A DNA stretch of 64,000 nt, from the sequence record MT135025.1; one strand, given 5' to 3'. The position numbers and the translations under genes were made by a program. The notes under the pieces were generated by a model that ran no database searches, was not told the origin of the DNA, and was given only the letters and a program-made list of their open reading frames with translations. Below, piece after piece: positions 22,555 through 26,932 of the stretch; position 1 is the first letter of the stretch, and each line of letters starts with the position of its first letter.

Positions 22555-23907
22555 GTGAAAGGGTATTTCTATCACAGATCGATACGAAAATACGTTCTCT
22601 TGATGGGAAACTTGTTCTCTAACATATACGTGTCTCGCGGAGACGGGTATAGAAAGGTGCCAATTACAGTTTCATCAAAGGAGCACTTTGTTGCATCTTT
22701 GAACAGTCAAGAGCTTAACGGCGACGGTAGCGTGGCAAATGTAGCTACGCTGCTACCAAGAATTGGCTTGGACATGGTTTCGTGTACGTATGACGCTACT
22801 CGAAAGACAAACATTGCAAATCGTAAGCTGACACGTGACTTTACGGGAGACCGACCTAAGTCGAACAAGTTGTTTAACCCTGTCCCTTACGACTTCGAAT
22901 TTGAAGTGAGCGTTTATACGCGACATCAGGATGATGCATTTCAGATTATAGAACAAATACTACCATACTTTCAACCTCAGTTCAATACAATGATCAAAGA
23001 GCTTGATGAAAATGAAGTTGTGGTAGACCAGCGTGATATTCCGATCATCTTAGAATCGGCTGTTCCTGAGACAACGTTCGAGGGTGCGGCTGGTGATATG
23101 AGACACATCGAATGGACGCTTAACTTGCGAATGAAAGGTTGGCTATATCCGCCTACAAACGCACAGTTTGGTGAAATCAGAACGATTTACCTAAACTTTC
23201 AAGATGAAGAACAAACGATCATTCACGCAGAGCGCGAAGCGGTTACAAGCTCTTACGACATTCTTTGGAAAGTTCGCTCAGAGGTTGAAGCACTTACTAC
23301 GTTCGGATGGCGTCATAGCGTTGATAGTCTATACGGTCTTGTATGGAACACACGTGGCGATATTGTCAGCGATCTTGAAATTGACTGGAATCGTCGATTC
23401 AGCATCACAGATGCATTGCAAATTGATTGGTCAACACGTTCAAGCGCGAGTTCTGAGCTATTGGTTGATTGGAATATTCGTGATGTCGTCGGTCGAGACT
23501 ACGATGTTGACTGGTACAACCGTCAGATCATTGAAAGCACATACGACTCGCCTTGGGGCGTATCACCAATTGCTTCTAATGAACTGGCAATCGACTGGGA
23601 TACACGTGAGTTTGTTGAACTCAACACCGACATTCAGTGGTCAGAGGGTGCAATTGCTGAAAGTAGCTTAGATGTTGTTTGGAATCGTTCTCAATATGTT
23701 GAAGCAGTGTCAGACATAGATTGGTCGACTCGCGCAGTCGTAACATCGGTCAATGACATAGATTGGTCAACACGTTCTGAACTATCGGCATCTACTGATA
23801 TTAACTACAACATGTCTTCACAAGTAACAAGCAGCTACGAAATGTACTACCTACCGGGTGAACTTGCTTGGAACTTCACTGACGTGACGTACAACATTGA
23901 AAACTAA
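22555..23907 (+). CDS. 15: Tail terminator gp15 with a long C-terminal repeat extension
   Basis: 'YFYHRSIRKYVLLMGNLFS', 'LPRIGLDM', 'NPVPYDFEFEVSVYTRHQDDAFQIIEQILPYFQPQFN'. GTG start; 450 aa versus about 270 aa in T4. Confidence 0.95.
   Translation: MKGYFYHRSIRKYVLLMGNLFSNIYVSRGDGYRKVPITVSSKEHFVASLNSQELNGDGSVANVATLLPRIGLDMVSCTYDATRKTNIANRKLTRDFTGDRPKSNKLFNPVPYDFEFEVSVYTRHQDDAFQIIEQILPYFQPQFNTMIKELDENEVVVDQRDIPIILESAVPETTFEGAAGDMRHIEWTLNLRMKGWLYPPTNAQFGEIRTIYLNFQDEEQTIIHAEREAVTSSYDILWKVRSEVEALTTFGWRHSVDSLYGLVWNTRGDIVSDLEIDWNRRFSITDALQIDWSTRSSASSELLVDWNIRDVVGRDYDVDWYNRQIIESTYDSPWGVSPIASNELAIDWDTREFVELNTDIQWSEGAIAESSLDVVWNRSQYVEAVSDIDWSTRAVVTSVNDIDWSTRSELSASTDINYNMSSQVTSSYEMYYLPGELAWNFTDVTYNIEN
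23245..23856 (+). repeat. Coding tandem repeat: 15 units of 14 aa anchored by Trp/Tyr in gp15
   Basis: W at residues 238, 252, 264, 278, 292, 306, 320, 334, 348, 362, 376, 390 and 404, then Y418 and Y432. Consensus xxLxIDWxxRxxV. Confidence 0.9.
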
Positions 23908-23912
23908 TACGT

Positions 23913-23937
23913 ATGGTCTTCTAAATATGAAGACCAT
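23913..23937 (+). promoter_or_regulatory. Perfect 9-bp hairpin whose loop holds the late-promoter core TAAATA
   Basis: ATGGTCTTC-TAAATAT-GAAGACCAT, which contains TCTAAATA. Confidence 0.6.
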
Positions 23938-23961: not shown

Positions 23962-24510
23962 ATGCCTATCGTAACAGGTGATTTGAAATTTAAGAAAAGT
24001 CTGCACGTAGTTGCAGCGGGACCGGGTAACGGCAATACGCATGATCTAGAAATTGATTCACTTGGTGGCGGTATTAGTGCTACTGAATTAGTGTCTGGTG
24101 AATTGCACGGTCTTTTTGATGCTGTGCCGTCAGCGGAAGCAGCATCAGGACGTGTTGAGTATCGTTTGATTTACGTACAGAACACACACGCTACATTGAC
24201 ACTGTATGATGCGAAAGTATTCATCTTTGCAAATACAGCATCGCCAGATTCAACAATCGAAATCGGTCTGGACCCTGTAGCAGGCAATGGCGTTGACTCG
24301 CTGATCTTGCTAGATGATGAAGTTGACTCAGGTAATGAATTGTCTGCGGTAGTATTCGGTGAACATTCTGATTTCGCATCAGGTCTAGACATCGGTAATC
24401 TACAAGCAGGTGAACAACGCGCCGTTTGGGTTCGTCGTACAATCAGTCCGGGTGCAGCGGCAGCGGCAGAAACTGCAACAATATCATTGCGCGGTGACAC
24501 TGACGCTTAA
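23962..24510 (+). CDS. Uncharacterised virion-type protein between 15 and 16
   Basis: 182 aa, good GGAG RBS, beta-rich. Motif 'SLGGGIS...LFDAV...EA..G.VEYRLIYVQN' of a kind seen in phage tail regions; absent from this position in T4. Confidence 0.8.
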   Translation: MPIVTGDLKFKKSLHVVAAGPGNGNTHDLEIDSLGGGISATELVSGELHGLFDAVPSAEAASGRVEYRLIYVQNTHATLTLYDAKVFIFANTASPDSTIEIGLDPVAGNGVDSLILLDDEVDSGNELSAVVFGEHSDFASGLDIGNLQAGEQRAVWVRRTISPGAAAAAETATISLRGDTDA

Positions 24511-24621
24511 ATGCTTATTTTAACGCTGTGTGCAGCTCGTACGCAGCGTTTGTCTATTTTATTGAGTGTTTGTACTCATATTATTGAAAAGACGCTCACA
24601 GAGCGTTTTAGAGAGGAACGT

Positions 24622-26932
<2,311 letters not shown>

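Follow-up and report, generated by a model that had tools for sequence, protein, structure and literature searches.

A periodic 14-residue tryptophan repeat extends the tail terminator gp15 of KVP40-like vibriophages and is linked to a small neighboring gene

We analyzed a window of 64,000 nucleotides (sequence record MT135025.1) from a T4-type Vibrio phage and, within it, gene 15, which encodes the tail terminator and sheath stabilizer gp15. The last 220 residues of this protein are an arm of 16 units that repeat every 14 amino acids, each anchored on a tryptophan or, in the last three, on a tyrosine. The repeat marks a large family of phage proteins, its copy number varies among close relatives, and it diverges quickly. 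In many unrelated phages it lies beside a gene of one particular family, and the member of that family in the window, just after gene 15, encodes a protein of 182 amino acids. Our preferred explanation, to which we give about an even chance because the fold, the place in the virion, and the contact are all inferred, is that the arm folds into a compact repeat domain, six per virion, that would sit at the junction of neck and sheath and act together with the 182-amino-acid protein.

The arm comprises residues 231–450 of gp15, and positions 23245–23907 of the window encode these residues plus the stop codon. Its tryptophans lie at residues 238, 252, 264, 278, 292, 306, 320, 334, 348, 362, 376, 390, and 404, that is, with a gap of 14, a gap of 12, and then ten gaps of 14. 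Three tyrosines (418, 432, and 446) continue the register of the tryptophans and bring the total to 16 units (13 with Trp and three with Tyr). One more tryptophan, Trp439, is out of register. Altogether, 46 residues lie after Trp404, the last tryptophan of the run. An earlier annotation of this DNA (the original prediction) had counted 13 tryptophans and two tyrosines, with a 14-residue spacing and one gap of 12; the tryptophans and the spacing stand, but the number of tyrosine units is three. Eleven pairs of adjacent tryptophans in the arm are exactly 14 residues apart. When residues 231–450 were shuffled, the maximum was five such pairs, and none of 100,000 shuffles reached 11. Tandem Repeats Finder reported no tandem repeat in the DNA of the arm, and two units taken from the first 13 have a mean identity of 40% in DNA and 27% in protein. 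The 14-residue period is thus held at the level of the protein, as had been claimed originally.

The repeat is not limited to gp15. A HMMER search with the arm found 420 representative proteins (clusters) at E ≤ 1e-3, and 147 of these had E ≤ 1e-10 (the best was 1e-37). Our closer analysis of the family considered the best 150 of the 420 matches (P0005–P0154; 270–2702 amino acids). The commonest spacing between tryptophans was 14 in 149 of these 150 proteins, with up to 37 such gaps, and BLASTP found the gp15 core in none of them. Most of the carriers are tail proteins from uncultured phages. The N-terminal parts that accompany the repeat are diverse (58 similarity clusters) and include DUF4082, Laminin_G_3 (a concanavalin-like lectin), Beta_helix, and the gp15 core. 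The arrays are mostly near the C terminus, often followed by a tail of 35–55 residues, which compares with the 46 residues in gp15, and the longest arrays in related loci have about 45 units. A hidden Markov model (HMM) of the repeat that was built from other members of the family matched gp15 (E = 1.3e-25) and no other protein in the window, and a three-unit HMM, also built from other proteins, matched the body of ten tryptophan units with domain E values down to 1e-8. Neither Pfam nor NCBIfam has a model for a 14-residue tryptophan repeat. Of 45 members that we sampled, 26 are matched by the PHROG family phrog_6079 (“tail protein”), which also matches residues 213–422 of gp15.

The 3,527 units that we collected have a clear pattern. 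Counting from the tryptophan, leucine is found in 40% of units at position -4 and in 49% at -2, valine in 48% at +2 and in 47% at +6, arginine in 52% at +3, and glycine, serine, or threonine in 60% at +7. Aspartate, asparagine, and arginine occur at odd positions. Read from these columns, the unit is an amphipathic beta-strand pattern with a turn from +7 to -5. A side observation concerns the residues that follow the arrays: in the post-array tail of P0012, residues 1045–1090 share 54% identity with a segment of a hypothetical protein from four Rhodobacter phages that lack the array (RcPutin, RcRios gene 14). Such C-terminal tails may be separate, exchangeable modules.

To model the arm, we ran AlphaFold2 on residues 216–450 of gp15 as a monomer, with an alignment of 39 family members. 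The model has a mean predicted local distance difference test (pLDDT) score of 64 (70–77 over the middle) and a predicted template modeling (pTM) score of 0.63. It contains strands of about 11 residues that start every 14 residues, with turns of 3 residues between them. With one such strand per unit and such short turns, the units would pair with each other, and so the arm is predicted, with moderate confidence, to be a compact all-beta repeat domain. The arm had no sequence match to solved structures. By shape, its highest template modeling (TM) scores in PDB (0.39–0.42) were to SufB/SufD-type proteins, at Foldseek E values of 1.5–2.6, which are not significant; the other leading matches were parallel beta-helices. 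SufD forms a flattened beta-helix in which each turn has two strands (PMC6006206). The long strands and very short turns of SufD/SufB (PDB 5awf) would suit two 14-residue units per turn, but these proteins have no sequence relation to the arm, and SufD is an Fe-S assembly protein without a tryptophan ladder, so the likeness is in shape only. From this weak and indirect evidence, the arm would most resemble a flattened beta-helix in which two units make up one turn; 16 units would then have a length of about 35–40 Å. A ribbon of antiparallel strands, about 70 Å wide, is a possible alternative fold. We rejected a closed beta-barrel or a fixed ring as the main reading, as the number of units varies more than two-fold. 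The triple beta-spiral of adenovirus and reovirus fibers and the YadA-type beta-roll were absent from the best 50 matches in PDB and BFVD and had no Pfam hit, although a monomer model cannot form trimeric folds.

The rest of gp15 is clearly related to T4 gp15. Pfam’s PF16724 (T4-gp15_tss) matches residues 4–232 with 255.3 bits (the cut-off is 25), phrog_227 matches the protein with E = 3.5e-91, and the solved T4 gp15 (4huh/3j2m) matches residues 1–222 with E = 6e-53. When we compared alignments of arm-bearing and canonical gp15 proteins with hhalign, residues 1–232 were aligned with a probability of 100%. T4 gp15 has 272 amino acids, and the gp15 proteins of T4 and six other canonical phages (269–277 amino acids) all lack the arm, which agrees with the earlier claim that T4 gp15 has nothing like it. 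In these seven phages, gene 16 comes directly after gene 15, with no 182-amino-acid gene between them.

In T4, the C-terminal domain of gp15 has three antiparallel strands that join two strands from the sheath protein gp18’s C-terminal domain in the top sheath ring, and gp15 contacts the top ring only (PMC12929629). As compared with T4 gp15 (PDB 4huh, 3j2m, 9mkb), the KVP40-type protein has a homologous N-terminal part of 230 residues and the same gene place, after gp13 and gp14. Its arm starts where the beta-strand domain of T4 gp15 starts and is also predicted to be all beta-strand. However, the T4 domain has about 45 residues, 3 strands, and no periodic tryptophans, versus 220 residues and 16 periodic units in the KVP40-type protein. 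Because the arm begins at the position of the first strand of T4’s sheath-docking domain, its first three units probably dock onto the gp18 sheath; the position alone is what suggests this.

We found gp15 homologues in 2,045 phage records, but only 41 of them cover at least 80% of the 450-residue query. A search with the arm alone found 51 records from Vibrio phages and two from Aeromonas phages (53 of 50,697 phage records), and among the approximately 2,000 records with gp15, the arm is confined to the KVP40-like clade of vibriophages. In nine relatives, the arm is 123–290 residues long (about 8 to about 21 units). Identity to the window in these nine phages is 21–61% for the arm, 57–97% for the core, and 45–89% for the 182-amino-acid protein, and sister KVP40-like phages whose cores are 74–97% identical still differ in copy number across that range of units. 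Judging from these identities, the arm evolves much faster than the core of gp15. Some features of the arm are nevertheless kept. W252, R253, and W264 never vary among the 11 gp15 proteins that bear an arm, the 14/12 spacing of the proximal units recurs in most relatives, and so does the terminal tripeptide, in which E449 is nearly invariant. The distant Vibrio phage EniLVp02 has an arm of 11 units with the same period and with phenylalanine or tyrosine in place of tryptophan. In the record for Vibrio phage 1.081.O (MG592456.1; locus L006, 2772–2965), the DNA of the arm is annotated as “CRISPR spacers 2-6.” This annotation is almost certainly false and caused by the 42-nucleotide period.

The second component is the gene that follows gene 15 in the window. 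In a forward test, we examined 80 loci from IMG/VR that encode a homologue of the 182-amino-acid protein, of which 61 have at least 2.5 kb of sequence downstream. By exact spacing (an open reading frame [ORF] with at least five pairs of tryptophans at spacing 14), 42 of the 80 loci have an array ORF. With the repeat HMM, 48 of the 80 do, among them 45 of the 61 loci with sufficient downstream sequence. All of the array ORFs are on the same strand as the 182-family gene, 46 of 48 are downstream of it, and 18 begin within 75 nucleotides; the amounts of flanking sequence searched were comparable (603 kb upstream and 541 kb downstream). In the reverse test, a 182-family gene was present at most 3.5 kb upstream in five of the five repeat proteins that we inspected. 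Among cultured phages, the arm and the 182-amino-acid gene share the same vibriophage records, and they are also found together in the distant EniLVp02. Co-occurrence of the repeat and this gene family across genomes, which the original prediction had put forward as a check, is thus strongly positive.

This is strong genomic support that the array and the 182-family gene are genetically coupled in many unrelated phages. We found no third conserved gene after the array genes: the neighbors there, of 93–114 amino acids, are mutually unrelated. The best 150 repeat proteins (phrog_6079 type) resemble the gp15 arm in their 14-residue tryptophan unit, in its usual placement near the C terminus, in the short tail that often follows, and in the link to a phrog_13135 gene (the PHROG family of the 182-amino-acid protein). 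They differ in that their N terminus is lectin-like, beta-helix, DUF4082, or unknown instead of a tail terminator, in that arrays of this type can have about 45 units, and in that the partner gene is upstream and not downstream. No part other than the array is shared by these repeat proteins, which makes the array the likely target of the 182-amino-acid protein; this protein most likely binds it.

The 182-amino-acid protein itself has no sequence match in Pfam, NCBIfam, or PDB. Metagenomes contain at least 110 homologues of 131–259 amino acids (most have 165–182), and the size of the protein is constant regardless of the length of the array. AlphaFold2 predicts an all-beta sandwich (pLDDT 82.6, pTM 0.83) with a conserved N-terminal strand, in which M1, I3, D7, and S13 are nearly invariant, joined by a low-confidence, glycine-rich loop. 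Fold matches to this model are weak (E = 2.5e-3 to 3e-2, TM around 0.3) and include the N-terminal domain of GH123, the TasA fiber, type 1 pilins, and an archaeal thread. Against subunits of strand-donation filaments in particular (8aur, 5iqo, 7pnb), TM was 0.28–0.33 with weak E values (3e-3 to 3e-2) and no sequence match, and we treat this likeness as a lead only. Donation of the conserved N-terminal strand might be how the protein attaches. In other phages, the 182-family gene is often beside head genes. At one such family locus (L101, 1653–2390), the gene caller had placed a 138-amino-acid gene on the minus strand, and it is the plus strand that encodes a 182-family protein (E = 1e-63).

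In our preferred explanation, residues 231–450 consist of 16 tandem copies of an amphipathic beta-strand unit, 14 residues long, which phage tail and fiber proteins share as part of a large, uncurated family of repeats. Each unit would contribute a strand of about 11 residues and a turn of 3 residues, and the strands would stack into a compact all-beta domain, with the tryptophans and the hydrophobic residues on the same face buried and with aspartate, asparagine, and arginine exposed. The array begins exactly at the place of T4’s three-stranded, sheath-joining domain, and for this reason we place six array lobes around the junction of neck and sheath. The conserved first three strands would dock the sheath, and the 182-amino-acid beta-sandwich protein would bind the array, either capping or bridging it or helping it to fold. 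The original prediction of a virion substructure that is absent from T4 fits with these results, and the array is very probably an extra feature of the virion.

Several results weigh against this explanation. The AlphaFold2 model of the arm is only moderately confident, given its mean pLDDT and that of the other four models (40–54), and it has no significant fold match (the best E was 0.12 in PDB and 1.3e-3 in BFVD). Covariation between units at lag 1 or lag 2, with which we sought to tell the antiparallel ribbon from a parallel beta-helix, is dominated by same-position signals, which reflect family composition and recent duplication; after shuffling within proteins, there were only weak signals near the turns. 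The profile comparison with canonical gp15 does not align T4’s three-stranded domain with the first repeat units, but ends at residue 232. We therefore abandoned the view of the arm as an expansion of T4’s own three strands and kept only the “same position.” The genetic link also has exceptions. In 16 of the 61 loci, there is a 182-family gene with no array within 10 kb. Alteromonas phage PT15-A5 (N4-like, Schitoviridae; L016, 5953–6432) encodes a 159-amino-acid homologue with no array ORF in its 12-kb locus, and Aeromonas phages BUCT552 and PhAER-6 have a tyrosine-type array with no 182-family gene in their 6-kb flanks. Furthermore, synteny fits a structural partner and a folding factor alike. 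Finally, we found no paper on the proteomics of KVP40-type virions or on cryo-electron microscopy of their neck.

These three phages deserve a further comment. PT15-A5 is a podophage, and its 159-amino-acid homologue is encoded two genes upstream of the portal gene. In BUCT552 (L009, 1981–6411) and PhAER-6 (L010, 2158–6420), which belong to the Casjensviridae, a gpJ-like tail protein of 1,420–1,476 amino acids ends in an array of about 15–17 nearly identical 14-residue units, with tyrosine instead of tryptophan.

The original prediction had a different geometry in mind: six extended arms would run along the outside of the sheath, with one 14-residue unit and its tryptophan plug for each ring. 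The dimensions are attractive, as 14 residues in an extended conformation span about 42–48 Å and the rise of a sheath ring is about 40 Å, and the C-terminal domain of T4 gp15 does touch the sheath. But that contact is with the top ring only, the units have the alternating pattern of strands in a sheet, AlphaFold2 pairs the units with each other, and close relatives have anywhere from about 8 to about 21 copies. Also, the repeat is common in phages whose tail genes appear non-contractile and in proteins headed by lectin-like or beta-helix domains; it is present on hundreds of proteins without a gp15 core, including the gpJ-like protein of the non-contractile Casjensviridae. At about 35–40 Å or about 70 Å, the predicted array would be an order of magnitude smaller than the roughly 630 Å of extended arms. 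We consider the extended arms to be extremely improbable. A closer relation to T4 is assumed if the array is an enlarged clamp that extends the gp15–gp18 sheet sideways, perhaps with six arms that meet in a closed ring and so encircle the sheath at its top. This would build on T4’s C-terminal domain, which joins the gp18 sheet edge to edge, and on the arm’s starting at the same point and being all beta-strand. A closed ring, however, needs a fixed number of strands, while nearly identical cores carry arms that differ more than two-fold, and the array is also found on proteins that are unrelated to sheaths, which makes such a clamp very unlikely.

The other two alternatives concern the role of the 182-amino-acid protein. 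If, as the original prediction also proposed, the array were a scaffold, or a ruler, on which copies of this protein bind or polymerize, with one copy for a fixed number of units, then the number of repeats would determine how large the resulting six filaments, or the collar, become. The tight linkage of array and gene would be expected, and so would the beta-sandwich with a conserved N-terminal strand on a glycine-rich, low-confidence loop and the presence of the TasA fiber, type 1 pilins, and the archaeal thread (strand-donation filament subunits) among the fold matches. Yet these matches are the weak ones described above, about a quarter of 182-family loci have no nearby array, and no result here supports a stoichiometry or polymerization, so that we think a scaffold is quite unlikely. 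Alternatively, the array could be an autonomous, exposed decoration or adhesin (e.g., one that binds polysaccharides), six-fold at the neck, and the 182-amino-acid protein could be a folding helper that is not in the virion. Genes for phage fibers often come with a chaperone gene; the arm is quick to diverge and to change in length, as exposed modules are; many members of the family combine the array with lectin-like or beta-helix domains, which are typical of host-surface binders; and the 182-amino-acid protein is far more conserved than the arm. A parallel would be the T4 long tail fiber, in which the repetitive, beta-rich gp37 stands beside small conserved proteins (gp38/gp57A) that the fiber needs, although we found no relation in sequence or fold, and the KVP40-type repeat is grafted onto a core tail-completion protein. 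On the other hand, the tryptophan face also has leucine, isoleucine, and valine, which points to a buried core rather than a platform for sugars; the Pfam and NCBIfam scans gave no match to a carbohydrate-binding family; and the 182-family gene is mostly upstream of the array gene, often in a neighborhood of head genes, which suggests a virion protein. On balance, an adhesin with a helper seems rather unlikely.

Returning to the compact domain that acts with the 182-amino-acid protein, we also entertain a broader version of it, more tentatively: the array and the phrog_13135 protein could be a widespread two-component phage appendage, which in KVP40-type phages is fused to the terminator and gives a six-fold collar of lobes that is loaded or capped by the small protein. 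If this is true, then these phages have a collar of lobes at the junction of neck and sheath that has no counterpart in T4 and is distinct from the fibritin collar.

Few tail proteins of T4-type phages are as well conserved as gp15. A clade of large marine vibriophages nonetheless has a 25-kDa repeat domain at its sheath-capping position, and the junction of neck and sheath in these phages should therefore look unlike that of T4, where the sheath-capping role of the small C-terminal domain was shown only recently. We found no paper on the arm of KVP40 gp15 or on a 14-residue tryptophan repeat in phage tails. The repeat marks a large family of phage tail proteins that is described in no curated library, and neither the repeat family nor its partner gene seems to have been described in the libraries and papers that we searched. 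Two families of “hypothetical proteins” (phrog_6079 type and phrog_13135) gain a joint role that can be tested, and annotators have a reason to avoid the CRISPR label, which is present in one GenBank record, for the DNA of the arm.

The features of the gene 15 locus are listed in Table 1. The window has 100% identity with Vibrio phage V07 (MT135025.1), in which it occupies the same coordinates, and 99.9% identity with KVP40; V07 is a KVP40-like Schizotequatrovirus. Pfam and PHROG searches with the neighboring ORFs show that the gene order wac (fibritin), gp13, gp14, gp15, terminase is kept, plus one extra gene before gp16: on the 3' side of gene 15 there is the 182-amino-acid ORF, which starts 54 nucleotides away, and then two terminase genes.

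Table 1. Features of gene 15 and the adjacent 182-amino-acid gene (coordinates are positions in the window).
Feature	Coordinates	Strand	Details
Gene 15, tail terminator / tail sheath stabilizer	22555..23907	+	450 amino acids, likely GTG start
gp15 core, residues 1–230	22555..23244	+	homologous to the ring-forming core of T4 gp15
Proximal three repeat units (Trp238, 252, 264; gaps 14, 12)	23248..23367	+	best-conserved part of the arm
Ten Trp units, residues 272–411, variable array body	23368..23787	+	strict 14-residue spacing
C-terminal tail: Tyr418, 432, 446 units and conserved last tripeptide	23788..23904	+	Tyr in Trp register
Terminator-like hairpin between gene 15 and the 182-amino-acid gene	23913..23937	+	9-bp stem, then T-rich run
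182-amino-acid gene, phrog_13135 family, predicted beta-sandwich	23962..24510	+	phrog_13135, E = 3.5e-112
Second terminator-like hairpin, just after the 182-amino-acid gene	24522..24550	+	12-bp stem and T run

The start of gp15 is likely to be the GTG at 22555, since a product translated from there can be aligned to T4 gp15 from residue 1 onward. In databases, gp15 begins at an internal ATG that is 16 codons later and gives 434 amino acids (window 22555–22602). A GTG start equivalent to the one at 22555 fits six of the eight relatives that we examined, and a seventh, phage 1.081.O, has an ATG at the equivalent position.

With a terminator-like hairpin on either side, the 182-amino-acid gene looks like a cassette that was placed between genes 15 and 16, and we found no late-promoter motif between 19045 and 26934. 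The second hairpin falls inside the N-terminal extension of the small terminase ORF (24511–25170), which is open from the stop codon of the 182-amino-acid gene and has a Pfam match only from residue 44; the true start of the small terminase is probably the ATG at 24622. The V07 record itself, at 349,331 bp, is longer than all other KVP40-like genomes (244–250 kb), and this assembly may contain extra or duplicated sequence.

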